This document shows, piece after piece, positions 1,316 to 62,668 of a stretch of DNA of 64,000 nucleotides. Numbering within the stretch: position 1 is the first letter of the stretch; every line of letters starts with the position of its first letter. The DNA is from Podarcis pityusensis. Taxonomy: Eukaryota. The stretch is from the NCBI GenBank assembly GCA_964106645.2, contig OZ067053.1, one strand, 5' to 3'. A program made the position numbers and the translations under genes. A model generated the notes under the pieces. It had not been told where the DNA came from. It was given only the letters and a program-made list of their open reading frames with translations, and ran no database searches.

Positions 1316-1594
1316 CCGTAACTGTCTGCAGCGACGCTGGAGCGGCTAGGATCTGAGGATCAGGAAAGCACTCAGCGCTGGCTACTGGAACAGTTTGAAC
1401 TGCTAGAGGACCACAGTAGGTGACTCACAGAGCGGCTACACCAGTTGTAGAGCCAGGCAGGACCTGAGGGTCAACAGAGGCAGCAGCTAGAAGCCGGTGA
1501 GTGCCAGTCAGGACTGCCCAGTTGGACTCTAAAGAGAGAGTCAGGAGAGATTGCTGGAGACCCCACAGAAGGGGCTCAGCAAGCACCAGCAGAG

Positions 1595-4500
1595 ATGGCA
1601 GATTTCCAGTCTTCCCAAGTTGTAAATATTGGGGGAGGCATCCCTTTTGAACTTCTCTCAGAAAGCAACTGGCTGAGTTGGTCAATAAAAATGCAGCAGT
1701 TGTTAAGGAGAGATGGACTATGGGACTGTGTTGAAACAGGTTTTGAGACAGGACTCTACTGAGAAAAGACGGCTGGATGAAAGGGCTCGTGCCCAAATTA
1801 TGCTGTGTTTGAGCAACTCTCAGTTATTGCATGTAGCAAATGCCAGCACAGCGTTTGAGTGCTGGAATTTATTAAGGGCAATGCATGTCAGAGAAAGTGC
1901 TGGAACTATAATTTCTGTGACCAAAAGGCTGTTCAGGACTGTTATGAAAGAAGGTGAGAGTTTGGCAACTCATCTTCAAACACTGAAATCTCTGTTTCTT
2001 CAACTACAACAGAGACGTAAGTGTTAGGATGAAACTGATCAAACCTACATTATCCTTTCAAGTTTGCCTGAAAGCTGGTTGCCTGTGATTAACAGCATGG
2101 AGAGTATGCGTCCCCGAGATCTGACCCTTGAGTATATGGTTGGAAGATTGACCGAAGAAGCAGAAAGAAGGTCAGACAGACAGGCTGAACTCCAAGAGCG
2201 GAGGAATTACAGCCGAGGGGGCCAGCAGCAGAATCTGCCAATGGGGCAACGCCAAGTTTGGGACTTGGGCATGGCGGTGAGGAGATGCTATAGATGCAGC
2301 CAAGCCGGGCATCTCCAATGTCAATGCAGGGCAAGACCTCCAGGAGACGACATGGAGCAGAGACAGCAATTGATGCAGAAATGTAAGCAGAAGGGGTTCT
2401 CTTCAGGGAAGAAGAACACGCGTTCTGCTCCTCTTGTGTCTGCATTTTCTCGAGAGGAGAGGAAGATACCTCGAGGAACATGGTTGCTGGACTCTGGTAG
2501 CAGCAGGATTATCTGCAACAGTCGGGAGGACTTTAAGACCCTGGGGAAGCCAGCTGATGGAAAAGACTCTATCTTGCTGATGGTCGTAGAAGCAAGATTG
2601 ATGGCCAGGGAACATGTTTCCTTCAGTGCTTCAACACTACTCTACCAGAGACTCTGTTTGTCAGCAGTTTGGACTATTGTTTACTGTCTGTAAGCTGTTT
2701 GATTAATGCAGGGTATAGTGTTAAGTTCACGCAGGATGGTTGTCTGATAAACAATGGAACTCAGGTATGTGGCCATGCAAAGTTGGAAAATGGGTTATAT
2801 GTAATGCAAGACAAGCCTGTTAAAGCAGCCCAGGTGGTTCAGGATAATTTGCCAGTTCATAAGGGGTGTGTACATGAACTGCACAGAAAACTGGGTCACG
2901 CCAATTTCCATGTGCTTTCAGAGATGCAAAAGGTGTGCAAGAACCTAAAAGTAAATAGCTGTAACTGTTTCCTAGATTGCAATGTATGTAAAATGGCCAA
3001 ATCTAAGAGGAAGCCTATGGCTTCTAAAAGTGACAGAGTATCTAAAGAGGTTTTAGAACTTGTCCATTGTGACGTGATAGGCCCTTTTCCACAGAAGACT
3101 GAAGGGGGCACCAGATATGCTTTTCTGGTAACAGATGATAAATCACGTTTTAGTTGGTTGTTTTTGTTAAAGCAGAAATCGGAGTGTTTCCCCACATTCA
3201 GAGAATGGGTTGCCCAAGCTGAAAAGCTCTTCGCTCACCCTGTTGTGCAGTTGCAAACAGATAAGGGTGGAGATTTTCTGAACAAACAATTTGGAGCATG
3301 GTTGTGACGTGAGGGGATCACTCACCGTTTGACTAACTCTTATAGCCCTGCTGAAAATGGTCTGTGTGAAAGACGTGGGGCTGTAATACAGTCAGTAAAG
3401 AATTGCCTGCTAGTGGATGCAGGATTGGGTAACAACCATAGGCTGTGGGGTGAGGCTTTCCTTACAGCAAACTTTTTGATTAATAGAACCTAGTTTAGCT
3501 CTATAAAAGATATTCCTTATTGTGTGTTGTTTGGGAAAGAACCAGAGTGGACAATGCTCTATAACTGGGGTTCTTGGGCACATGTAAATATCCCCAAAGC
3601 TCAGCACCCGAAAGGGGGCGCTAGAGCGCAGAGACTGCGGTTTGTGGGATATCAGCCCTATGCCAAAGGGTGGCGTTTCAATTTACGCCCAGAACGCGTG
3701 GTTCTGTCACGAAGTGCAGACTTTGCTGACCAGGACAGATGGACTGCGATCCATGCCAACCTAGATTGCCTACTGCTTCTGCAAGTAAGAGAAGAGGCTT
3801 CTTCTCAGCCATTGGCAACACAGGAGCAGGATGAGGAGGAGGCACAGATTTCCCCAAAAGATGTGGCAATAGATAATACTTCTCTAGAGGAAGAGGAAGA
3901 AGGGCCAGAGATAAGGGGGGAAGAAGAAGTAGTTGTGCCTAGGCACTCCCAGCGTTCAAACAAGGGTGTACCTCCTCAGCGTTTGACCCTAGGAGGAATG
4001 AAAGTATGCAGTGTGAGTTGTGTGGAACCACAAAGTTATGATGAAGTCTTAGACTTACCCCCGGGGAACGTGCTTTGTGGGAACAAGCTATGAAAGAAGA
4101 AATGGACTATTTTAAACGCAACAAAGTTTTGAGGTCATAATGCCGCCACCTGGTGGCAGAGTGGTGTCATGCAAGTGGGTTTATAAAAGGAAAACCCTTG
4201 CATCTGGGGAACCACGTTTTTGAGCCAGATTAGTAGCCAGATTAGTAGTTCACTCAGATTAAAGGGGAGAGTTATGATGAAGTGTTTTCTCCTACTGTAA
4301 AGAGTGAAACTTTTCATTTAATGCTCTCTATTGCTGCTGCAATACAACTAGCAGTGCACCATTTTGATGTTGATGCTGCATACCTGCATGCAAATTTAGA
4401 CCATGAAGTGTTAATGAGAAAACCCCCTGGGTTTGAAGAGGGGAATGGTGCAGTCTGGCATTTGAAAAAGGCTGTTTATGGTCTCAAACAAAGTGGAAGG

Positions 4501-6148
4501 TGTTGGAACCAACCAGTGTTTAAACGAAGCCCTTGTAAAACTTGGTTGTACACCAAGGGGACAGGCAACAAATATCTAATGCTCTTAGTTTTTGATTTGC
4601 TTGTAGCAGGGAGTTCCACAGATGAGATCCAGAAGCTCACAAGTCAACTGGAAAAGAAGTTTAAGCTTAAAGCCTTAGGGCCTGTAAGCAATTACTTGGG
4701 AGTAGAAGTAAGTTAGGAAGCTTCCTATTGAGCCAGAAAGAGAAAATTCTTCATTTGATAGAGCAGTTTGGCATGGAAAACTGCAAGCCAGTTCAGACTC
4801 CCATGACACCAGATTTCCCAAAGACAGTGTGTGACGATGAATTTGATCAGCCTGAGTTGTATCACTCAAAAATAGGATCACTGCTGTGTTTAAGCCAGTG
4901 GTCAAGGCCAGACGTTGCATGTGCTACAAATGTTCTGAGCCAACGTGTATCTAAACCCAGTACTGCCGATTGGTGTGCTTTGAAAAGGCTTATCGGATAT
5001 CTAAAGGGGACATTAAATGTATGTTTGAAGATATCTAGTACACAAGACGAAAAACTAGAAGGATTTGTTGATGCGGACTGGGGAAGCTGTGTAGCTACTA
5101 GAAAATCTACAAGTGGAATGGTTATGATGTTTGCCAATTCCATAATTGGATGGAGGTCAAAGAAACAAGGATTTGTTGCGACCTCATCCTGTGAGGCAGA
5201 ATATGGGAGCCTGTCACTAGCATGCAATGAAATCATGTGGTTTATACCAGTGTTTTTCAACCACTGTTCCGCGGCACACTAGTGTGCCGCGAGATGTTGC
5301 CTGGTGTGCCGCGAGATGTTGCCTGGAGGGAGGCGGGCGAGTCGGGCGGTGAGAGGCGGGGCGGTGGCGGCGAGGAGAGGCCGCCCAGCGCGGGGCTCTC
5401 GCCGTCTGCCTGCCTGGCTGCCTGCGAGCTCGGCGGGCAGCGCCTCCGTCCGCAGCGCCCGCCTCGCGGCTCTCATTCCCTGCCCCTGCCAAAGCTCACC
5501 CAGCCAAGCCGCGCTCTCCTTCCTGCCTCGCTTTGCTGCCTCCTCCCCCCCCACCCCCAAAGCTTGGAGGTTCCCCGGCGCCGACCCGCAGGTTTGACCC
5601 CCTTCTCACACCTGTTCGCGCTCCTTGCACGGAATGGGGCGGATGGGGAGGAACGGGGCTCGCCGCTGCCTCCGCTCGCCCTCCCCCCCTCCGCCGGCGG
5701 TCCCGCGATTCTTGGCTTTTTGGCGGTTGGCACAGAAGGAAGGCAAGGGGGAGGGAAAAAAATTGAAACTTACACTTTCGTGCGTCCCTCCCGGCGTGAC
5801 GCTGCGCGCTGACGTCACGGGGCTGTAATGGTGGTGTGCCTCGAGATTTTTTTCATGAAACAAGTGTGCCTTTGCCCAAAAAAGGTTGGGAAACACTGGT
5901 TTATACAGATACTAAAAGTTCTAGATTGTAAAGTAGATTTGCCTATCCAAGTGTATGAAGATAGCCAATCGTGCATTGTGTTAGCGGGCTTGGAAATAAT
6001 AAAATCCGCATCAAAACATATTGCTATCCGTCATGCAAATGTTAAAGATTGTGTACAGAATGGGGTAATCAAACTGGAGTATTGTCAATCACAGGATAAT
6101 ATTGCTGATTTGTTTACCAAGCCTTTGCCAGCAACATGCCATAATTAA
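1595..6148 (+). pseudogene. Copia gag-pol, frameshifted with multiple stops
   Basis: Gag NWLSWSIKM...GLW; Zn knuckle CYRCSQAGHLQCQC; protease WLLDSGSS; HRKLGH..CNVC; integrase LVHCDVIGP and LQTDKGGDF; RT HHFDVDAAYL, KAVYGLKQSGR; RNase H GFVDADW, SSCEAEY, YEDSQSCI, NIADLFTKPL. Confidence 0.9.
5248..5898. mobile_element. Non-autonomous hAT (Charlie-like) element nested in the Copia RNase H
   Basis: TIRs CAGTGTTTTTCAACC / GGTTGGGAAACACTG (13/15); perfect 8-bp TSD GTTTATAC (5240-5247, 5899-5906); removal restores EIMWFI-QILKV. Confidence 0.92.
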
Positions 6149-44408: not shown

Positions 44409-44497
44409 GGGAGGAGATGCGAGATGGGACGTGGAAGAGCTGCTGGATGAACTCCCAGACCCAGAGCTCGGATAAGAAGGCATTGGCACAGAAGCAG
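44409..44497 (-). CDS. ULK1: ULK1 exon 12 equivalent
   Basis: 89 nt; ASVPMPSYPSSGSGSSSSSSSTSHLASPP. Confidence 0.95.
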
Positions 44498-47400
44498 CTG
44501 AAGAAAGAGGGCAGGGGGAGGGGAGAGAAGAAAGAAAGGTCATGCTTTCTAGGTTGTCAACAGCGGGATTAGAACAGCTTTCTTGGCTTCCTCACGCTAA
44601 CGGATTTACCTCAGGTGCCAGGCGACGTCACTGAACTGAGGCAGGGAAGGGGGGAGGGAGAAACAAGTTGGCATTCAGTGCAACTGAATGTGGCAGGTGC
44701 TCTTTCGCTTGCCCCCCGTCTGTGAAACTGTCGTTTATTTCACCCTGCAGCAGATTCTGAAGTCTGAGGCGCCATTTTCTGACTTCTAAATGTCTTTGGT
44801 CTCTGTCAGGGGTAGTCAATGCAGACGGTGGACTCCCAGCTCCCATCAGCCCCAGCTAGCATGGCCAATGGTCGGAGCGGGGGGGAGTGCAGTCCAACAA
44901 TGTTTGAAGGGCACAAGATTGGCCCAACCTGCTGTCTGCCTGCTAGAACGCAAACAACTTTTTTTGTTGGAGCACTGCAACAGTGGCATGACTCAGGTCT
45001 ACTATATTTCTTTAAAAAGTCCTTTCTCCGTCCTCACGCACAGATTCTTGCGGTGTTGTTGCTTTAAGTATTTTTTTAGGATGTGGTTGGCTGTTTTGAA
45101 TGGGAAGCCGCTCTGAAAGTCCTCAGAGCCAAAGCGAAGGGTCCGAAATAATGCAGACAGTGGTCAAGTACACTTGACAGAGCCTTCCCTAAATGCCCTT
45201 TGGAATTCCTTACCCAGATAATCTGGAGTCCTCCAGATCTTGTTCGGACTCAAACCCCCTTTGCTCCCAACCACTGGGAGCTGGAGTCCAGCAATATCTA
45301 GAGGGTGACAACTTATTCTAATTTATCGATCACCTTACACACATGCCTCAAGGCAATGTACCGAATGCAGCAGAACCAGCTGAAAACAGTTAAACACCAC
45401 CAAAAAATAAACAAACAGCAGCAGATAAATTTCTGAACAACACCAAATATACCCATGGCAGAAACCTAGTCATACAGTTGGGAAAGCTGTTGGAACAAAA
45501 TACGTCTTCGCTAGCTTCCAGAAAGGGCAGATAATGGGCATCTGTTGTATCTCAGCAGGAATGCTGTTCCACAGAACAAGGGCAGCAACACTAAAAGCAC
45601 TTCTTCAAGTTACTGCAGAGTGAGCTTCCAATTTCTTTGGAAGTTGCAGGAGAAGCTCTTCCATAAACTGCAGTGGTGGATAAGCTGGTCTCTTAAGAAA
45701 TCTGATCCTGAGCTGTTTAGAGTCTTAGTACCAAAATGTTTGAACTTGGCCCAGTAGAGGACGGGCAAACAGTCCAAATCCTGCAGCCTTTGAGGTGCTG
45801 CATCCTGGTGGCAGCTTGCCTTCACAAGCAACCTGGCTATGGTGTCCTGCCCCACCTGCTCCCTCTGGGTCAGCCCCAAGGTAGCTCCACATGGAGAGCA
45901 TTGCAGGTATCCACCCATGAAGTTACCAGCGCATGGAGAACTGTGGTGAAGTTCTCCATCCCTGCCCTAGAGCTATCGGTATGGCTTCCTCCAATGACAT
46001 TCCAAGCAAAAGAGGGTGGGGAAAAGATAGACAGATATTGTTTGGCAGGCTCCCTACCACTATCAGACATTTCAGAGGTATCTCAAGCACTGTGTCTGGT
46101 TCTTCACACAATTTGAAGAATTTATTATCTGCCGGTCTCTTTCTGTGTTTTGTTTTGTGTTGGGTTGTGTTTTGTAGGCATTCAATGATGGCTTGTTTGT
46201 TTGTTTTTAAAATCATTTCTGAGCTGCCTTGAGTACCTCACATTGATGCAGAAAAACAGAACTGGAATACTTTCAACTAAATAAATAAAGCGCAAGAGAA
46301 AATATAAAGAAAACTGAGCCCTGGAGCACAGTGAAATTGATTGATTCTGAATTTTCACATCATGTGTGAAAAACGTTTTAAAACATCGCTATTTGTTTTG
46401 AAGGGTGGAAGGCTATAATTAATTTTGAAGGGTGTGAAGCTGTAATTAATTAACACACCCCAGCTGCAGCTGTTTTCTCTCTCTCTGTACAACAGCAACA
46501 GGAAAATTACTGTCCAGCTATAGCTTCTATTACTCCAAAAGAATGAGATGATGTACTTTTCTCCAGCTGATAACTAGAAGGCTAAGATGATGGTGGTTGC
46601 ACACAGAAGAAAAATGTTCTCAGTAAAGTCAAAACATATTTAATTAATGAAAACATCCCTGGGGACTACCATAAAATGACATCATATTGCTGATGTTTTA
46701 ACAGCCAGGTGTTCACTTGCCCTGTGAAACCATGTTTTGACTGCCTACGCTTAGCATATTTTGGCAGACATGCACCATTCTGAGCTAAGGCACTGGTTGG
46801 ATTGGTGTGAGGAAACCAATGGGATAACCAATAATAAAAAGAGGGAGGGAATTATTTGTACACTGCAAGGGAAGGAGAAAACAAAGCAGGATTTTTGTCT
46901 ATGCAAGCCTGGATGATATATGCTCAGAAATGGAAAGAGCGATTAATCAGGATATGCAGTAGCAATGGGTAACTAAAATGAACCATGGAAGGAGGGTGGG
47001 GAAGGGAAGTCAATGACTATCGTATGGTTATCTTTTGGCTTGAATGTGAAAATTTGAAATGAAAATTATTTTTTAAAAAATTAAAAGAAGAGAACAGGGG
47101 AGGGGGCCAGAGCTTAGAGGTAGAGCTCATGCTTTGCATGCCAAACACCTGAGCTCCAGTCCCCGAAATCGCTAGTTAAAACAATATGAGGTACTGGGTG
47201 ATGAGAACAGCCTCCTCTGGAGGTTCTACAAAGTCACTGCTGGACCAAACAGACAGTCTTAAGACTAGATGGCCAAAATAGTTAATAGGGTAAGTTCCTT
47301 CCTATGTGGTGGCAAGAACTTCTGCTTTCAGTGACACTCATGTGTGGTGGTGGGGAACCAAGTGTTTGAAGATTTCATACTTGCATGATTGCATACGGAG

Positions 47401-48529
47401 CGCTTGCCTCATCGCGTGTGCATGATGAAGCAATGGAGGCCCAGCACTCCGCTACACAAACTGCAGCACAGACAGTGCATGACAAACCACGTCTATACAA
47501 AAATCATCTTGCTATTCCCACCCAAATCTTAAGGGGAATTCAGCATAGACTTGCTGGTATCTCAGCCAGGACTCACAAATCCACACAGCATTGACGAATG
47601 GCTCATTACGACTGCCAAACTATTTACACTGCAGGTACATATGGATATAGATGGGGCACCATCCAGGGAACTGCTTTTGTATAAATGAGCAGGGTTACAT
47701 ATTCCTCTGGGCAGGGGCCATTCACAAGCACAACTGCAGGAGCTCACACAGACTCGACCTCTGCCAGGGTTCCCTAGGACTGGAGGATTCATGTTGCATA
47801 TGACTCTGCACCACTGCAGATGATCGCAAAGGAAAATCCTCTGCCAGGCTGAGGAAAGTAGTCCAGGGCGTTCAGTGCCAAGCAAGAGGTAGAAAGTAGG
47901 ACTCAGCAAAAGCGAGAGTCTGGGCAGAACAGGAATGAGTCTGGTGAATCAAAGGAAGTAGAATGTGGAGAGAGGCTGGAACAGGAGATGAACAAGATTA
48001 TTATTTTTGCCCCCAAGCAGGTGTGGGGAGAGAGGGGCAAAGGGATCGGTGGAGCAATGAGACAGAGGGGATAGCTGGTGTCTCCTGCCTTGATTCCTTA
48101 GAGCACTTTAAAAGGTCTCTAGGTGAAGATCTGGCATCCTTTAAAAGAAACTAGCTCCACCAACCTGATTATTTCACCTTGAGCCTGGAGAGACAGTGAT
48201 ATTAAACTTGAATTAGGTGTCTCCACCCACACATCTTCAGATTACCTATATAATTCCTCTCCTCATAAAAGGAGGCCTGCTGAGTCTCCAAGTCCTTGCT
48301 TAATTGAGAAAGATTAGGTCTCAGCTCTCTCCACCACAGTCTGTTCTAAAAATGTAGCACAGCTCACTTGGGGGAGAAATCTTCCTTAGATGAACAACAC
48401 CAATGCTGAATTGTTGAGCTGCGGTGGTTCTTGCCTAGTGAAGGGCTCTGCATTAAGCAACAATTACATTGGTGAATTTATAAAGTGATAGTGGGGTGGG
48501 ATTTGTGGGGGACGCACACACACAGAGGT

Positions 48530-48777
48530 ATTTTAAAGGGGTTCTAATCAGTTCCAAGGTCCATTCTTAACCTGAATCTGTTCTTAACCTGAAGCACCAC
48601 TTTAGCTAATGGGGCCTCCCACTGCCGCCGCACAGCCAGAGCACGATTTCTGTTCTCATCCTGAAGCAAAGTTCTTAACCCGAGGTACTATTTCTGGGTT
48701 AGCAGAGTCTGTAACCTGAAGTGTCTGTAATCTGAAGCATCTGTAACCTGAAGCGTATGTAACCCGAGGTACCACTG
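48530..48777. mobile_element. Tc1/mariner (Tigger-like) MITE, one end
   Basis: Ends AACCCGAGGTACCACTG-TA with repeated TAACCTGAAG subterminal motifs; the left boundary is approximate. Confidence 0.6.
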
Positions 48778-49451
48778 TATTTGATTTAAGAACTTTTAAA
48801 TCCACTAACACAGTGCTAAATATTATATCAGCAGTGCAGGTTGTTTTGTTTTTTAATATAAAGGAGTTTATTTAAAAACAACTGCAAGTGGAAAGAACTA
48901 TCTTAAAAGAGGCAGTCTCGCTACTTATAGAAGGCATCATCACAGAAGAGGCATTATTTACACATGGTAGGGAACACTTCTAGCAACAATGGCGGGGAAC
49001 CTGACTTCCTCTATAGGTTGTGGGACTCCAACTCCCATCAGCCTCAGCCAGCATAGTCAATGATCAAGGATGGTGGGAGTTGTAGTCCAGCATCATAAAA
49101 AGGGCTGTAGCATCCCCGACCCTTGCTGTAGGATGATGCCTGCTACAATACATCTGAACACAAAGGAAACATGCCAAGAGCTTTAGAAACTGTTTTTGCC
49201 CAATAGATTAACTGATAAAACTGAATTAAAACTGTCATGATTTAGCAACTGGCACTTCTTTAACTGAGCTGCAGCTCTAGCCTTACCACTGCCGGTACCA
49301 CCAATATGACCCCACACAGGTTATTGTTGCCATGCAATATCATTAGTTATCATTAAATGGGGGGGGGGGGGGAGAAAATCCACTAAGCAACTTTTATGGC
49401 AAAACACAAACACTTCTGCCCAAGTTATACAGTTTCGTTTTTAGAAAAATA

Positions 49452-49457
49452 TTTATT
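49452..49457 (-). terminator. ULK1: Candidate intronic poly(A) signal for the alternative last exon
   Basis: AATAAA on the minus strand with an upstream AU-rich tract and downstream GTGTTTGTGTTTTG. Confidence 0.5.
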
Positions 49458-50648
49458 TTTCATAATTCAGAAATACAGATGTCTCACTTTACAGATATAT
49501 ATAAATAGAAAAAAATAGGAACAAAGCATATAAATAGGCTATAAATAAATAAAACTGGAACGAACATATAGAAAACAAGTTTCCAGTTAACAGAATGAAG
49601 GCATCCAAAAGGACTCGGTGGTGCTGAGAAAAGATAAAGAACTTGCACCATGCCCAGTTTCATTATTGGGCAGGCCAAGGAAGATTTAAAAAATAATAAT
49701 CAAGGAAAGAGAGAATTGTATGAGGCAGAAACTACTGACCATATCTTGGTGGAAGGTACCATGATCAACACAATACATTCTCTGTTGCCAAGCTCATTGG
49801 TTTCACCCAGCTCCATTGCATCTATCCTGACAAATATCTCTCCAAGGTCTCACAGAGATATTTTCCTGTCCTGACACCCTTCTGACTAGAGGGCTGTCTG
49901 CACTGTGCACTAACTGAGTTATGGTGTCTTCCAATAACACCACCAGGAGACCAGGCAAATAGCCACAGATAAAGCAAGTGCTCAGGGAATCGTATGAATA
50001 AGACTCTTAAAAGAAGCACAAGCAAGCTGCTCCTGTCATTTATCCATCACAGCACAGGTAACAAGAAATCAGAGGATGAAGAAGCCACCTCTTTCCTCAA
50101 AATGGTTCCCCTAAACACTGAGATCTCTAGGCACCTTCAGCTTTCTGGCTCTTCTCTCGAGAGTCCTGATTAATGCACACACACAAGCAGCAACCTGGCA
50201 GCCACTCACCACACAAGAGTCACTCGCCACATGGATCTGGAGCCTTTCAAACGTAACACCACAAATCTTTGGAGGGCCTGCCCAGGTGTGGTGATGAGGG
50301 AATGGGGGAATGGGGGTTACATCCAACTAACTTTTAGAGTGGACCCACTGAAATTAATGGACCTTAAGTTAGTCATGTCTACCCTAAGCATGAATAACCT
50401 GGACACAACTGCTGGTGTCACATGATCAGCTGCCTTCTGGTATTCGACTGACTACCATATTATTATTCTTTATGAACTGGGCCTGAGGCCCCTACAGACA
50501 AGTATTAGGACTGAAGTACATGATTACAAGCCTCCGGACAAAAGCCCTCTCGTATAGCAAGCACCAAAAGATGAAAAACTTGAGCTTCTCTTCTCAGTTT
50601 GGTTGTTTTCTGGCTGAAGGCTGTGACGTGATGAGCTTTCTTCCCGAT

Positions 50649-51223
50649 TCACACCCAGATGTAGCTGTGCCGTGACCTGGGGCGTGCAAGCGCCTGTTGG
50701 CATGGGCGTCTCATGGGACCAGTGTCCCAAGGCAGTGGGCTGGACGATGCAGGAGACAGTGGCCGGAAGATGGGAGCTCTTCTCTGCCTCTCTTGGCTTG
50801 GCCGTTTTGGCGGGGTCACCCCACGCAGCGGTTGTGAGGAGGCTGGCAGTGAAGGAAACGGAGGCCAAGTCAAGAAAATCCTTTCTTGCTTCTGCGGGAA
50901 TCCCCGCGGGCTGCAGCTCGGCTTCCATAATGCCGGAGCCGATGGCGGTACTGTTCGCGGTGGCTGCCAGGCTGCCTGGGGCGCAGAAGATCCTTCCTGG
51001 TTGGCAAGGGGCTCAGATTTCGTAGAAATGTTTCTCCACTGGGGCACCGTGGTGGGAGCAGGGAAGTCTGCAGGTCTGTAAGTGCCCTTGAGTCGGGAAA
51101 ACGCTTTCCGGTTTCGAGGGTGGCCTTCCCCCCAGGGTGACACTGCGGTTGTAGGTAAGGACCGGGAGGGCTTGGAAGCGCCCCTAAACCAGGATAATAT
51201 TTTTCTGCCCGTGGGAGTGACAC
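50649..51223 (-). CDS. ULK1: Putative alternative terminal coding exon of ULK1 (191-aa tail ending SYIWV)
   Basis: Acceptor ccctcccttaactatacttag|G at 51224-51225; phase-1 entry from exon 11 is stop-free for 191 codons; CpG-rich relative to the surrounding intron. Confidence 0.55.
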
Positions 51224-51466
51224 CTAAGTATAGTTAAGGGAGGGGGGGATTGTATTATTTAAAATTACGATCAGGGAATGAAATCATAACTCTCCTGCTT
51301 CGAAGCAATGGTGACCCAAGGCTTAGGTTTCCCTACAGGCGTCCAATGTTAGGACACCTTGTGGCAGGCTTACGACAGGTTTAAAGCAGAATGTAGAAGT
51401 CCCCAGTGTCTCCCATTGTTTGCTGACTGGCTGACTTGATAAGAGAATTGATCCATCATAATTGCA

Positions 51467-51525
<59 letters not shown>

Positions 51526-53037
51526 GCTACAACTATCACTACGTAGTTCCAAAAACACTATTTGGTAAACCCGCTCCAGTGAAGGGGCACTTTGTCAGGT
51601 GAGAATTGGAAAAGTAAAAGCACCCAGCCCCCATTGACCCAGTCTTGCACGTGGTTCTCACCCCACACATTCCTATTATGTCAGAACCCACATTTTTGCC
51701 GAGATAATGTCTAGCTCCACCCTTGAACTAATCCTGTTGCAGATGGATTATGCTATAGCATACCCCATGCCTGATTTAAGTTCTGAAATTCACTGTACAA
51801 AGCCACTTTATACACAGAGTCAGATTACCGGTTCATCAAGCCCCTCTTCCCCAACCTGGTACCCTCCACATGCTTTGGAATATAGCTCCCACGAGCCCCA
51901 TCTAGCCCCATGATTACCAACAGTTATAGTTCTGAGACAACTGGAGGTCATCTGGTTGGGGCTAGCTAAATACTGCTTCTTCTCAAAGTGGTAGTGGCTT
52001 TCCAAGGACTCCCAGATTCGTGCCCTAAGATTCTTTCAATGATAACATGTGGGAAACTCAACCTTGACCTTTTGCATACAAAGCATCTATTCTACCACAA
52101 AAGTCATAGCGTGTGTTCTTTGGGAAATTCTTAATTTTTCATCTCTCTCCTAAGAAGAAACTTCTCAGGTGTCATTTAGATGTATCCTCAACATGTAAGA
52201 AAGCCTCTATTTACTTTCAGTTCTGGAACTGTTCCACTTTCCACCCCTCCAAAATTCTCCATCCCTTAGACCTCATAAGTCAATGGATTGCTGTCCTGTT
52301 TCAGTGTATGCTACAGCCCATTACTTCAGGCACAAAAATGAGCTCAACAAAAAGCAGAAACCACCATTATAAAGATTAAATCTAAAGCGGCCAGACAAAG
52401 TCATGATGACATGACTCCCTTTATCATCGTAAAAAAAACCCAGACAGAATTAATGTGACAAACTCAATGCCAAAACATTGTTCCTATGCAGTGATTACAA
52501 ATCTTTTAAAAATGCCAAAGGGAATTGGATTTACATATTTCAGCTACATGATTAAAACTGCCAGTTTCTGAAGCACTGCAAGAGATGATATGTGCCAATT
52601 CATAAAGATGCTTTAGTCTCACAGACTCGCTGGCTATCACAGTTGAAAGGATACTTACATGTACTTTTGTCCCTCAAAAGAGGGTCTTGAAGTGTAACAA
52701 AAACCCCACCCTCCAAAAAACTAAGCTACTCCCACAGTTTTCAGAAAGCTGAGATTTTGTCAGCACCTAGTCAAGTTACTAATAAAGGTCTGAAAACTTG
52801 GGAGGTGCAATTTGCTTCTAAAGAGAGGCAGCCTTCTAGCACAGAGCAAGCCAAGTCATCTATAGAATGGAATGGTCGGGCTGTGGAAGTTCTGCCGCCT
52901 CTTCTCACACCCAAATGAGCCTAAGAGAGAACCACCAATAACGTGCTTCTAAGCTTGCACAGTGCAAGCTGAAATCTACAGTGTAGGTCCGGTGTATGTA
53001 TTGCAAAAAAGAGACTGAGATAACAAAACGAACTTAC

Positions 53038-53088
53038 ATTTTTTCATAGAGGCACTTGCATCCAAGAAAGGGTGATGGAAAAATTCAT
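53038..53088 (-). CDS. ULK1: ULK1 exon 11 equivalent (end of kinase domain)
   Basis: 51 nt; DEFFHHPFLDASASMKK; ends in phase 1 at a GTAAGT donor. Confidence 0.95.
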
Positions 53089-54317
53089 CTGAAGAAAGAA
53101 AAAGGAAGAAAATGTAAATATCGATGTTTTACGAAGTTAGAGTTCAATCATGCAAAAAACCAAAAACCAAACAATGTTTAATTATCTTACTTGTTTAAGT
53201 AGGATTTGTATCCTGCTTTTGAGTCCTCAAAAAGCTCTTGGGTAATGTGCCAAGTCTAGCTTGAGAGCATTTAAAACAGTCCTGGCAATCTTCTTCAAGA
53301 GCCAAGCTATCAGGTACAGGACAGAGGACTTGAGAAAAGATTTTTAACCTATTGCCCTTCACTGTGGTTCCAAACTTGATCTGGGGAGGACTGAACATGG
53401 TATTTCTCCTCTACCACCCTGCTCACTAGCCTGCACGCAGTTCCTTCTTGCCTGTGGCTACCAGGCTTCCCCAGCCTTGGGTCCCTGGATGTGATTGGAC
53501 TACAGTTGTCATCAGCCACAGCAAGCATGGCCCATGGTCAGGGATGGTGGATGCTGTAGTCCAACTTCAGCTGTGGACCCAAGGTTGGCAAAGGAAGGCT
53601 TAAATGCAAGACAGCACCAACATTCAGGAGTGGCATGTCTTTACTCCTCCAAGACCACAGAGTGTCTTGCTTTGAGGCATCCTACAGCCACCTGGGAAAA
53701 ACCACAGACAGCTAGTTGACAGAAGCTTACCACCGCCCAACAAAACGGCATTATTAGGTCACCCTATTAGTTTAAAGTACAATGACCATATCCACCCCAC
53801 CCCCCTCAAAAATAAATAAATCACAATGGTTTTGCTAAATCCGGCCATGCTTCATCTATAAATGTACAATTAAAACTGGGATCAGTTAATCCCTGGCCTT
53901 GATTTGGCCAGCTGCTTGGGGATGTTCTCTAAAGCCCAGTTTCATTGACAAACATAATCTGAAAGAATAACAGACGGCAAACCAATTAGGATTAAGCCGG
54001 GGTTGACAGCATGATGTCTGCAAAGGATCAGTGGTGCTGGGGGAGGAGAGGGGCTTGAATCAAACTTGAATGAAGAGAACAATCAGCAAAACTTTGCCAT
54101 GCGAGATGCTGATACCTTAAAACAATGTCCACAAACCTCCTTCAAGCAAAGGGGTGCACTGAGCTATTGTCAACCCTCTGGGGGCACAGCCAAAGTGTGA
54201 AAGTCGGTGTGTCTGAAGTGTAAGGGCAGAGTCAATTTTATTAAAGGGCATCTCTTTCTTTGGTGTGGTTCTGGTCTGACTTGTTTACGAAGTGTCTCAG
54301 AAGGCAAAATTCCTTAC

Positions 54318-54400
54318 CAAAGTCCATGCGGTCCTTGTGGTTCCGTTGCAAGAGTCCTAGCAGCAGCTGCCTCAAGTGGGCTGATGTCTCCCTTGGAATG
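54318..54400 (-). CDS. ULK1: ULK1 exon 10 equivalent (kinase C-lobe)
   Basis: 83 nt; [27 protein letters not shown]. Confidence 0.96.
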
Positions 54401-55605: not shown

Positions 55606-55764
55606 NNNNNNNNNNNNNNNNNNNNNNNNNNNNNNNNNNNNNNNNNNNNNNNNNNNNNNNNNNNNNNNNNNNNNNNNNNNNNNNNNNNNNNNNNNNNNNN
55701 NNNNNNNNNNNNNNNNNNNNNNNNNNNNNNNNNNNNNNNNNNNNNNNNNNNNNNNNNNNNNNNN
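55606..55764. other. Assembly gap (N run)
   Basis: Run of N. Confidence 0.99.
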
Positions 55765-56985: not shown

Positions 56986-57251
56986 TGTTAGGTGGTGGGT
57001 TGACATAGCAGCCGGCACAGCGATTTCTTCAAGTAGCTCTTTATTATGGTAAGCTGGAATAGAACTGACTGCGAACAGCTCAGCCGGCCTGTATTTATAG
57101 GCAGCCGGCTGTCAACATTGTAACCACAACAGCCCAGAGTTCCCGCCTAAAATAACTGCCGCGGACCTGAGTGAAAACTATCTACAGACCTGAGTGAAAA
57201 CTATATACAGTATCCCCCTGTTGGCCCAGGGTGAAACTACACTACATAACA
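56986..57251 (-). repeat. Gypsy 3' LTR
   Basis: Identical by eye to 61674-61939; on the minus strand, TATAAATA at ~57092-57099 and AATAAA at 57040-57045. Confidence 0.95.
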
Positions 57252-57364
57252 CCCCTCCCCACCGAGATAAGGCGTTAGTTACAATCGTAATGGTTTCCTT
57301 ATATACAGCACTACGCGTAATGGTTCAATTAAGCACAAAAGCATATCGGTTACATTTCCCATAC

Positions 57365-60300
57365 TTAGACCAACAGTGATACCTGTCCAACAACATAGTC
57401 CTTTAAATAAGTTGGGCGCTTGGAAACTCTGCCAGACCGCCGGGGACTGGTAGCCAAGTCCGGAGGGCCACACAGTTCTCGCTGAGGCTGTGGTGCGACC
57501 CTAGGTGGTGTTGGAACCAACTCCCCTGGATCCGCTGCTGTGGGTGGAGCCTCCGCAAGTGGAGTGGTCTGAGTCTGTTCTGAAACGGCTTGGTTCGGCT
57601 CCACGCTGGCAGTTTGTGAGGGAGGTGTAGGTGGGGCCTCGCCATCTGTACGTGTCTCTTCTGGAGCCGCAAGCGCAGTTGGGGGCACCTCGGTAGTGTC
57701 CAAGTCCCCAACCCTGCGCCTAAGCTGGTCTATGTGCCGTCGCCACAAGCGTCCGTCTTCGAGTGCCACCTGGTACGAGCGAGGTCCAGTGACTCCCACT
57801 ACTGTGGCTGGCACCCAAGGGATGTCCCCCACATAGTTCCGGGCAAAGACCTGGTTTCCTGGGACAAATGACCGTGGTGCGTTGGCACAGCCTGGGGGTT
57901 CAGCCACGGCAAAGTCTGGGTGTAGCCGGTCGAGCGGTGACCTGAGGCGGCGGCCCATAAGCAGTTCAGCAGGACTCCTCCCTGTGGCCGCATGAGGGGT
58001 GATGTGTTGCACGAACAAGTATTCGGCGACCCGCTCATGCCAGTCTCCCCGGTCCAGGCGCGCCAGTGCCTCTTTTGTCGAGCGCACCATTCTTTCCGCT
58101 TGCCCGTTGCTGGATGGATGAAAAGGTGCCGTTAGGGCATGGCGGATGCCCAGTCCCAAAAGATACCGCTCAAACGTGCCTGACGTGAACTGCGGTCCGT
58201 TGTCAGAGACAAGGACATCAGGACACCCATGCGTTGCAAACAGGCCTCGCAGCACCCGGATGACAGCTTCGGTAGTGGTGGAGGGCATCAGGGCGACCTC
58301 CAGCCATTTGGAATAGGCGTCCACCACTACCATAAAGGTCCGGCCGTGAAAGGGGCCAGCCAGATCGATGTGCACCCTCGACCAGGGTGTCTTTGGCGTC
58401 TCCCAGGTGTGTCCCTTAGCTGCCGGTGGTGCAGGCCTCGACTCCTGGCACGCTTGACAGGCGGACACCCAGGCAGTGATGGCATCGTCCATATTAGGCC
58501 ACCAGACGTAACACCGAGCCAACGCCTTCATTTTGACAATTCCCGGGTGGCCAACGTGCAGAGCCTCCAGGACGCGCTGACGGAGTCCCTGGGGAATCAC
58601 GACGCGGTCTCCCCACAGCAGGCAGCCACGATGAGCTGAGAGTTCATGTTGTCTGGTTGCGAAGGGCTGGAACTCCGATGCAAAAGGCCCTTGTGGCCAC
58701 CCCCTCCACACCCAGTTGAGCACCCGGCTGATGGTGCGATCCTGGGCAGATGCGGAGGCCACAGTGGCAGCCGATACAGGCGCTGCCGGAAGATCCTCAA
58801 TCAGAAGGAGCGATGAAGCTGGAGCCGGGTCTTCCACAAATGCTGGAAGAGGGCAACGGCTGAGGGCGTCGGCATGGCCCATCGATTTCCCCGGGCGATG
58901 GATGAGCCGGTAGTGGTAGGCAGCCAGGAAAACAGTCCATCGCAGCATGCGTGGTGAGAGGACCGGTGGAGTTGGACGATCACCGGCGAGGAGGCCCAGG
59001 AGTGGCTTGTGGTCAGTGATGAGGTCAAAAGTCCTGCCATAGAGGTATTCATGGAACCTCTTCACTCCAGCCACAAGTGCCAATGCCTCCTTGTCGAGCT
59101 GGCTGTAATTCCGTTCCGTTGGAGATAGTGTCCTGGAAAAGTAGGCGAGCGGTGCTTCTCTTCCATCTGGAAAACGGTGACTAAGGACAGCACCGATGCC
59201 AAAAGGTGAGGCGTCGCAGGCAAGGACCAGCGGCCTGGATTCACTGTACTGTACCAGCACACTGTCTGAAGAAAGGAGAGCCTTGACCGCGTTGAAGGCC
59301 GCCGTCTCCCGATGACCCCAGGCCCAAGGCGTCTTAGTGCTAAGGAGTCGGTGAAGAGGCTCAGCCACTGTGGCTTTGTGGGGCAGGAACATGTTATAAA
59401 AGTTCAGCAGCCCCAGGAATGCCTGCAACTCCGTTTTGTTCTTTGGGGTGGGGGCCTGCTGGATAGCGCGGATCTTGGATGTGGTTGGATGAAGACCGGA
59501 GGCATCGATAAGATAGCCCAGGAACTCTACCTGTGGAACGGCGATCTGGCACTTCTCCCTCTTTACCTTGAGCCCGGCCTCCTGGAACCTGGTCAGCACG
59601 GCACGGAGGCGCTCGAACAGCTGCTGGTGTGAGTCTGCAGACACCAAGACGTCATCAAAATATGGTACCACGCCCGGAAGCCCTTGCAGGAGACGCTCCA
59701 TAAGGCTTTGGAAGATGCCAGGAGCCACACTCACCCCGAACTGCAACCGGCGGCAACGGAAAGCCCCCCCGGTGGGTGACGATCGTCTGGGCTTCAGCAG
59801 TGGCATCATCGACTGGCAGTTGTTGATAGGCTTGGGCAAGGTCCAGCTTAGCGAAGACCTTACCCTCACCCAGGGAATGCAGCAGGTGTTGGACAACAGG
59901 AACCGGATAAGCGTGCTGCTGAAGTGCCTTGTTGATCGTGCACTTGTAGTCAGCGCAGATTCTCACCGACCCATCTGGCTTGACAGGCGTGACGATGGGG
60001 GTTTCCCACTTTGCGTGGTCAACCGGCTCCAAAACTCCTTGGGCGATCAGTTTGTCCAGTTGTTCATCCACCTTAGCCTTGAGAGCAAAGGGAACCCGGC
60101 GTGGCTTTAGCTTGATGGGGGCGACTTGTGGATCAAGGCTAAAGGAGATGGGCGTACCTGTATATTGGCCCAAGGTGCCGTCAAAAACCTCGGCAAAGTC
60201 TTTGACCAGACCCTCAGTCTCTGCGTTAGAGATGCAGTTGATGCCGGTGACTTCCAGGCCGAGGGCATCAAACCAGTCTAGCCCTAGGAGGCTTGGCCGC

Positions 60301-61478
60301 TGACCTTCGACCACCACCAACCGGAGCAGGCCCGAAAAATCCTTGAAGGCGATCCGGAACCGGCCAACGCCTACCACGGGAATGTCGTTTCCCTGGTAGT
60401 CTCTCAGGTGTACGCGGTGAGAGTCGAGTTGCCTTTTGGACACTCTGGGTACCAGTCTTTTGATGGTGCTCCATGACACGATGGACAGGGCAGACCCGGT
60501 GTCGATCTCCATGTCACATGGAGCTCCTTCAATGAGCACCGTGACGTTCAGCTTGCGTCGCGTAGGCGAGTCGGTTTGGCCAATCGTGGTTCCAGACGGG
60601 CAGCGGCAGTTGGTGAGAGCGAAACAACTTTCCTTGGCAGACTGGAGTGAAGACTTGGACTTGCGAATCGATGAAGGGGGGGTGTCAGACGGAGCCGATC
60701 GGCAGACCTTAGCGATGTGGCCCCTTCTGGAACACTTCCTACAGATGGCGTCTCTGAATCGACACTTGGCACGGGAATGGTTGCCTCCGCAGCCAGCACA
60801 TTCCGGTTGGCCCTTGGACTTCTGTTGGAACTTCCTGCGCTCCCGCTTTGTCTGGTGCACGTCATCGTCTTCACTGGAGGATGCCTCCTCACTGCTGGCC
60901 TTTTCATGATGCACCGGAACTGGCTCCCTAGCAAGACGCGGGCTGCTGGACTTGCGGATCTCCTGGGCGGAGCGTTCAGCAGCTTCTGAGGCCACAGCCT
61001 CCTCAATGGCTTTCTGTAGCGTGAGGTCTGGCTTGGCTAGGAGGCGCCGTTGCAGATGGATGTCCCGGACCCCGCAGACGATTCGATCCATCAGGGCATC
61101 GTCTAAGTCTCGGAACTCACAGTGCATTGCAGCCTGTCGCAGGGCGGTGGTGTAGTTGTTGATTGACTCCCCCTCTGCCTGGTTCCGGTGGTAGAACGCA
61201 TGGCGGGCAGCAATCTTGGACGGCTTTGGTGCGTAGTGGTTGCGGAGCTTCTCTTGGATCGTGTCCCATGGTGTTGCCTGGACTGCTTCAGGCGCAACCA
61301 ACGCTCGGGCCGTCTCAAACACCTCAGGCCCACAGAGGCTGAGGAATAGGCCCCGCTTCCGCTCCTGTGATACTTCTGTCAGCTCGTTGGCTTGGAGGTA
61401 GCAGTCGAACCGAGCGAGGTAGGAGTCCCATGATTCAGAGGCTGGCGCAAACGGCGGTAGAGGCACAAGTGAAGCCAT
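57365..61478 (-). CDS. Gypsy Gag-Pol (~1370 aa) with a single 1-nt frameshift at 59764-59770
   Basis: Two Zn knuckles; protease IDTGSA; RT YFDD; RNase H LACDAS and TDHKPL; integrase HHCC with HIDLAGP, SDNGPQF, NGQAER. The two track ORFs join at THRG-AFR. Confidence 0.92.
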
Positions 61479-61654
61479 GATTCCGATGCCGGCGTGAAGG
61501 GCGATGGATGGAACACAGTGCTCTAGCCAGAACAGTCAGCTCTGAATTGGTTCTGCCCAGTGATTTCGCTCAGTGATTTCGCTCTGTGATTCAGCTCAGT
61601 GATTCAGCTCAGTTCAGAGGCTGGCCGCATCTGGCTGTGCTCTGATGTCCATCG

Positions 61655-61672
61655 ATCCCATCCTCGTCGCCA
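61655..61672 (-). promoter_or_regulatory. Primer-binding site, tRNA-Ser(GCU)
   Basis: The + strand ATCCCATCCTCGTCGCCA matches the recalled 3' 18 nt of vertebrate tRNA-Ser(GCT) plus CCA; 1 nt from the 5' LTR. Confidence 0.85.
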
Positions 61673-61673
61673 G

Positions 61674-61939
61674 TGTTAGGTGGTGGGTTGACATAGCAGC
61701 CGGCACAGCGATTTCTTCAAGTAGCTCTTTATTATGGTAAGCTGGAATAGAACTGACTGCGAACAGCTCAGCCGGCCTGTATTTATAGGCAGCCGGCTGT
61801 CAACATTGTAACCACAACAGCCCAGAGTTCCCGCCTAAAATAACTGCCGCGGACCTGAGTGAAAACTATCTACAGACCTGAGTGAAAACTATATACAGTA
61901 TCCCCCTGTTGGCCCAGGGTGAAACTACACTACATAACA
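61674..61939 (-). repeat. Gypsy 5' LTR
   Basis: 266 bp, adjacent to the PBS. Confidence 0.95.
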
Positions 61940-62668
61940 CCTTCCAATGTGGATGAATAGCAGCCCTTGGGATTCCAAACAGGAAGACTTGGACTTTTTA
62001 TCCATGCAGTGAAACCAATGCCTGAACCTGAGCCCAAGCAGGTTCGTACATGACGGTAAACACTTTTGGGCACCTGCCAAAATCTAGGTCCTTTCCCCAG
62101 TTTGAACATGCATAGGATTTGAATGGACTCTGTGTGCGCTACTGCTGTTTTAAACTGTGTTGGTGTAGAAAGCCTTGTGCAACTTGAGACCAGAATACCA
62201 GTTGTTCCCTCCCGGTGATATGGAAGTCCGCCTCGCTTATAGCTATCAGGAATGCACCTCCACTGTACCATTTTTAGCGCCTACTAAAAATGTTTTTTGT
62301 TCAGATACCCAGATATCTAGAATCCTGATGTGTCTTCAGTTCATTGCCATTTTTAGTTTTTTGAACGTTTTAAACAGTTGTTACAAGTAATTTTATTGTT
62401 TTATTCTTTTCGTAAACTGCTTTGAAGCTTGTTTGTATATAAATTTTATGAAATAAGTAAAATTTGCATTTAATGTTCCCAGCCCTAAGAGGTGCTGCAC
62501 CTCCTCTATAGCAAAGATTTGGCAAACTTCATTGCTTTTGACTTCCAGACATCTTTCTAAACCAGACATCAGGCCTATGCAGCTATTTAAAATTTTCTTG
62601 AGAGGCCAGTCCTTTTAAAGATATTTCTGTACTGCATTTTTTTAAAAAAATGTTGCTATACAGTACAC

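Follow-up and report, generated by a model that had tools for sequence, protein, structure and literature searches.

A spliced and selected alternative last exon in the ULK1 gene at a Podarcis pityusensis locus

The stretch of DNA analysed here, referred to as the window, comprises 64,000 nucleotides of contig OZ067053.1 of Podarcis pityusensis and carries part of the gene for the kinase ULK1 on its minus strand. The identity of this host gene follows from exon 10, which finds its best match in ULK1 kinase structures (E 4e-10), and from an exon further downstream, which is similar to the C-terminal domain of ULK1 in 8SOI (E 3e-16). The search of the 64-kb window did not reveal exons 1-9, and the exon in which the kinase domain ends is presumably exon 11, a number that we take from human ULK1. 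The coordinates of the features discussed below are collected in Table 1. Upstream of exon 10 there are 159 N (55606-55764), representing an assembly gap or a masked stretch, and the intron upstream of exon 10 also harbors a full-length Ty3/Gypsy-type LTR retrotransposon (56986-61941, minus strand) in the orientation of the gene. The LTRs of this element are 100% identical over 268 bp, indicating a young insertion, and its gag-protease-RT-RNaseH-integrase sequence is spread over two frames. Pieces of a Copia-type retroelement, with Pfam matches to integrase, GAG-pre-integrase and an SH3-like domain, are present at about 1400-5300 on the plus strand.

Table 1 Features of the ULK1 locus in the window, in the direction of transcription
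Feature	Position	Strand	Evidence or remark
ULK1 exon 10 (kinase C-lobe)	54318..54400	-	structure match
ULK1 exon 11, end of kinase domain; GTAAGT donor, phase 1	53038..53088	-	
In-frame Met codon inside ULK1 exon 11	53047-53045	-	
GT..AG intron removed in the new isoform, 1814 nt	51224..53037	-	joint in X18 and X15
CTGAT, branch-point-like motif	51270..51274	-	TGAT core kept in 12/12 sequences compared
3' splice site AG	51224..51225	-	followed by GTG in all homologs
Alternative last exon, coding part, 191 residues	50649..51223	-	translation, homologs, codon models
C-terminal motif, conserved (basic residues ... x-W-hydrophobic-stop), class II PDZ-ligand-like	50652..50672	-	
3' UTR, about 1.2 kb, approximate end	49430..50648	-	RNA-type coverage in X15/X18
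3' UTR block, 130 nt, 71% identical to L001 (E 6e-10)	49484..49614	-	
AATAAA poly(A) signal	49452..49457	-	AATAAA also after the matching block in L001
Canonical ULK1 exon 12, competitor for the exon 11 donor	44409..44497	-	

The original prediction, made from the letters of the window, was that the phase-1 donor of exon 11 faces an acceptor about 1.8 kb further on, from which a frame of 191 codons stays open. Both the coordinates and the translation confirm this. The acceptor reads ...CTTAG|G at 51224/51223 (minus strand), a putative branch point is offered by the CTGAT at 51270..51274, and the new exon measures 575 nt up to the end of the TGA stop (50651-50649). The encoded tail consists of a split Cys codon and 190 further codons, making 191 residues, and runs from CVTPTGRK to SYIWV. 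The segment is indeed GC-rich within an AT-rich intron, as had been proposed, with a GC content of 0.59-0.61 over 50600-51100 versus 0.37-0.48 in the flanks. An open reading frame by itself is weak evidence, since a frame this long appeared in 55 of 4997 dinucleotide shuffles of the segment (about 1.1%); it is splicing and conservation that settle the question of a real exon. Overlapping open reading frames, such as a 134-codon ATG frame at 50928-50524, were discarded, the other frames being interrupted by stops across the homologs.

The stretch is present in 20 public runs from five related organisms, and four runs of a close relative, organism C, were compared with positions 47400-53250. Two of these, X15 and X18, were taken as RNA by guess, their type not being on record, and the clean GT..AG joint that they contain argues for RNA. 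In contigs of organism C, position 51221 is joined to 53036 with CT..AC at the cut +2, which corresponds exactly to removal of a GT..AG intron from 53037 to 51224. The depth of this junction is 10.9 in X18 and 362.9 in X15, runs that belong to different studies; thus the predicted 53038-to-51223 junction was found to the nucleotide in two independent studies of a close relative. In X15, the contig covering the exon has a depth of 227 and the downstream UTR contig 389, against 9-25 for introns. In both runs, coverage is unbroken to about 49500 and has dropped to about 1 below 49360. The end of coverage near the AATAAA at 49457 fits a terminal exon. A poly(A) tail was not seen at the cleavage site in these contigs, which cannot show ends, or in the few raw reads. 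The segment thus has what is expected of an alternative last exon: a canonical junction with a preceding ULK1 exon in two studies, an in-frame stop, its own 3' UTR and a poly(A) signal. Together with the fall in coverage near AATAAA and the conservation of acceptor, frame and stop described below, this bears out its prediction as an alternative last exon of ULK1, and we conclude that the exon is real, spliced and selected. Expression looks sample-restricted: depth in X19 is low, X22, from the same study as X15, contains next to none of the sequence words of the stretch, and in the raw single-cell run X23, of which 6% was read, a few reads fell in the 3' UTR and none spanned the junction.

A cassette exon was considered as well and rejected, the segment being without a strong donor upstream of the stop. 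Within the 3' UTR, a donor-like GTG|GTGAGT occurs at 50210 (minus strand), where depth does not drop; splicing from this site to exon 12, which lies outside the compared 47400-53250, would make a decay-prone message. About 700 nt beyond the new poly(A) signal there is a very high-copy repeat (48540-48800; summed contig depth >200,000) that resembles a small DNA transposon with internal repeats.

Homologous exons were recovered from 11 other lineages, which by their sequences appear squamate-like, crocodilian- or turtle-like, or bird-like. In the protein P0001 the tail is 58% identical and the stop is the same, and further tail homologs are P0002-P0005 and additional bird-like open reading frames. 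All nine contigs that reach exon 11 carry the new exon just downstream of it; the new exon precedes exons 12-13 in L005, L010, L014 and L016, and synteny with exons 10-13 is found in L005, L010 and L016. The contigs L001 and L003 stop short of exon 11, and their orthology is based on the exon, the acceptor region and, for L001, the UTR block; DNA similarity of L001 covers the exon, roughly 70 nt before it and the 3' block, and no more. These two are probably squamate-like and nearest to the window. The loci L005, L009-L014, L016 and L026 are apparently bird-like, and loci of this group have a 1-kb intron and introns that can be aligned at 72-82%. L004 falls outside both groups and may be crocodilian or turtle, and the P0004 cluster (>300 contigs) is probably chicken. 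The sequence AG|GTG in phase 1 is kept in 12 of 12 lineages. No homolog contig looked human, as exon 10 differs from the human PDB sequence, and no mammalian counterpart was seen, the exon occurring so far only in sauropsid-like contigs.

Selection on the frame was estimated with a GY94 codon model and a likelihood ratio test against an omega of 1. Omega was 0.47 for three squamate-like sequences (LRT 25.5, p 4e-7), 0.74 for six bird-like sequences (p 0.012) and about 0.61 for all ten (p 3e-10), values that the protein-guided alignment pulls down somewhat. Pairwise values among the bird-like sequences are 0.63-0.87, most pairs being singly not significant, and much of the tail drifts, as these high values indicate. 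In intact homologs, net indels are multiples of three, and 2-8 stops occur in the other two sense frames of every lineage. In a neutral simulation the frame was open at all 10 tips in 0 of 1000 runs; the count of frames retained among the homologs is biased, since these were found as open reading frames. Free of such bias is the comparison with organism C, whose exon contig differs by 5 substitutions in 618 nt and is ungapped, whereas UTR and intron together differ by 34 in 1545 nt (Fisher p 0.03). Frame conservation is thus combined with a dN/dS below 1, as expected of a protein-coding exon, and these substitution patterns show the new exon to be under purifying selection for a protein in this frame. 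The frame is kept, as are the acceptor and phase in 12 of 12 lineages; lack of both a junction and conservation, or a match to a transposon, had been named beforehand as what would speak against the exon, and junction and conservation were found, a transposon match not.

The tail is rich in proline (18%) and basic, with 30 K/R versus 7 D/E. It is predicted to be disordered, AlphaFold giving no structure (pLDDT 57, pTM 0.13), and no paralog, family, structure or Pfam match was obtained, nor a usable match in PDB profile and Atlas searches. Conserved blocks are present within it. K/R-x-x-[FS]WFR lies close to its start and L[TAV]WP centrally, the others being PL..GP and the terminal W-hydrophobic. 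A W-hydrophobic-stop end occurs in 11 of the 12 lineages; translated with the standard code, the tails terminate in IWV, VWV (twice), YWC, YWF (four loci), YWV, CWF and CWL, and arginines precede each of these ends. A class II PDZ ligand is defined as hydrophobic-X-hydrophobic at a free C-terminus (PMC6747541), a pattern that most of the lineage ends match, with CWF and CWL in two lineages. In the chicken-like lineage (L005, L016; P0004 cluster), a 10-nt deletion near the end of the exon shifts the frame, by which the W-hydrophobic end is lost and a longer tail with RAFL as its last residues is produced; 15 of 15 cluster members carry the changed end, and the old YYWF persists out of frame. 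The protein P0033 is also without the terminal motif. Judged from these alignments, the W-hydrophobic end is retained usually, not always. The suggestion of a PDZ-like end therefore holds insofar as tryptophan, a hydrophobic last residue and upstream arginines are conserved, but the end is not specifically a valine and it was lost in at least one lineage. C-terminal extensions in P0002, P0005 and P0034 are gene-caller artefacts in which TGA was read as Trp, the DNA having a stop, and P0021, P0025, P0027 and P0028 probably show the same artefact.

The position of the new exon determines what its product would lack. The motifs FVMV, HSAP and FTVGSP and the canonical end GICA are all located downstream of it in the window, so that the LC3-interacting motif, the AMPK and mTORC1 sites and the domain that binds ATG13 and FIP200 are encoded beyond it, as the exon order implies and as had been anticipated, including the canonical GICA end. 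In ULK1, the PS region provides LC3 binding and phosphorylation by AMPK and mTOR, and the MIT domains bind ATG13 and FIP200 (PMC9532564). The explanation that we consider probable is a choice between two acceptors that compete after exon 11, the proximal one at 51223 and that of exon 12 (44497). Use of the proximal acceptor, with polyadenylation near 49430, would give a short mRNA and, provided that it contains exons 1-10, a product of about 477 residues, which would keep the kinase domain and lose the LC3-binding, AMPK/mTOR-regulated PS region and the ATG13/FIP200-binding MIT domains. Without these, the usual recruitment and regulation would be impossible. The disordered, basic, proline-rich tail might then serve as a targeting arm, partners being bound by three short blocks conserved within it: K/R-x-x-[FS]WFR, L[TAV]WP and W-hydrophobic at the end. 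That the free C-terminus acts as a class II ligand of a PDZ domain is a tentative part of this proposal, to which we give slightly less than even credence. Such an arm would bring an active ULK1 kinase to substrates outside autophagy, restricted to a tissue or stage; testis can be envisaged as this tissue, but this is a guess that may well be wrong.

Instead of delivering a new kinase form, early splicing and polyadenylation could serve to attenuate, lowering full-length ULK1 and autophagy in one tissue, with the tail acting as a degron or a dominant-negative element. Hydrophobic C-termini can serve as degrons, and the tail is disordered and fast-evolving. Furthermore, the junction depth in X15 (about 360) is close to a rough estimate of the total depth of exon 11, so that the short form may dominate in this run, contig depths being a poor measure. 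However, attenuation needs no frame of 190-210 codons with internal conserved blocks and an omega of 0.47, and we regard it as an unlikely explanation. About as improbable, or marginally more so, is that the exon belongs to a small basic protein without a kinase, of roughly 195-220 residues, made from an internal promoter with entry at exon 10 or 11 and a start at the Met of exon 11 (or 10). In its favor, the exon 11 Met is in frame and occurs in those loci whose contigs extend to it, and the part of exon 11 observed in continuity with the new exon is just 26-32 nt long. Yet this Met belongs to the canonical protein, which already accounts for its conservation, and in X15 the bases of intron 10 that adjoin exon 11 have a depth at background (about 22), so that exon 11 itself appears to be spliced from upstream. 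The whole kinase domain is likely to be in the same mRNA, joining having been seen as far as exon 11.

A transposon was suspected at first, because the pyrimidine tract before the acceptor resembles, on the plus strand, a polypurine tract (51236-51250) and the intron preceding exon 10 harbors a Gypsy-type element. However, a transposon remnant or a chance open reading frame, in which such an antisense tract mimics an acceptor, is extremely improbable as the nature of the segment and, as a description of its present state, refuted, given the lack of retroelement similarity and the synteny, selection and splicing of the segment. The original prediction had noted no transposon hallmarks, and agrees with the searches: in self-BLAST and in tBLASTn with the Gypsy ORFs, the segment resembled the Gypsy and Copia elements of the window neither in DNA nor in protein, the frames tested gave no Pfam match, no second copy is present in the window and depth over the exon in the organism C runs is not repeat-like. 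An ancient exapted origin is conceivable and would leave the present nature of the exon unchanged.

If the preferred reading, a short ULK1 in which the kinase is joined to a targeting tail and acts outside autophagy, is extended, sauropsids may since the lepidosaur-archosaur split have kept a short ULK1 of restricted tissue distribution, released from control by ATG13/FIP200, AMPK and mTORC1, directed by its W-hydrophobic C-terminus to a PDZ scaffold and maybe dominant, although we find this wider claim rather doubtful. If true, it would provide a natural, genetically separable non-autophagy ULK1 kinase, possibly the dominant form in its tissue. The autophagy and non-autophagy roles of ULK1 are hard to separate since both are assigned to one full-length protein. 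The isoform would keep the kinase and drop every known autophagy-complex and nutrient-sensing element, and removal of one exon would spare canonical ULK1, which makes a clean test possible. In birds and reptiles, part of the ULK1 signal obtained with 5' primers or with antibodies to the kinase domain may come from a non-autophagy form. A limit to this is set by the bird-like lineage with the most sequencing, probably chicken, in which the end is altered.

The isoform is apparently undescribed, although automated annotations may list it. As expected from the original prediction, the literature search yielded no paper on a last-exon, truncated, intronic-polyadenylation or lizard isoform of ULK1. 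Annotated kinase-plus-tail proteins were not found either among candidates of 189-602 and 170-540 residues or among 50% representatives, which is weak evidence because the collection may be limited to one product, the longest, for each gene. Among known systems, LKB1, a kinase of the AMPK pathway, has a testis-restricted short isoform with an alternative last exon; there the exchange is confined to a short C-terminus, while in ULK1 about three quarters of the protein would be replaced. Skipping of ULK1 exon 5 reportedly also shows that splicing can alter ULK1 output, and this skipping and PRPF8-dependent mis-splicing are said to be mammalian loss-of-function events, not a conserved coding last exon. 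The PRPF8-dependent mis-splicing of ULK1 is a further case in which splicing alters ULK1 output (PMC9532564). A non-autophagy role is known for canonical ULK1 in neurons, where it uses the PDZ scaffold syntenin, with SynGAP (PMC3330011, PMC6747541); this concerns the full-length protein, whereas the new isoform would be without the C-terminal domain and ends in W-hydrophobic. A close parallel is DRP-1beta, which arises by an alternative last exon of DAPK2 (Shoval et al. 2011). Its exon is similar to the tail of a paralog, ZIPk, and every known vertebrate locus has it (PMC3050894), unlike the ULK1 tail, which is without a paralog match and so far found in sauropsid-like contigs only. Even though the tail seems to have no known relative, the architecture, a kinase with a swapped tail, would already be known from DRP-1beta, where in a Ser/Thr kinase one conserved alternative exon likewise replaces the whole extra-catalytic region and changes the binding partners (PMC3050894).
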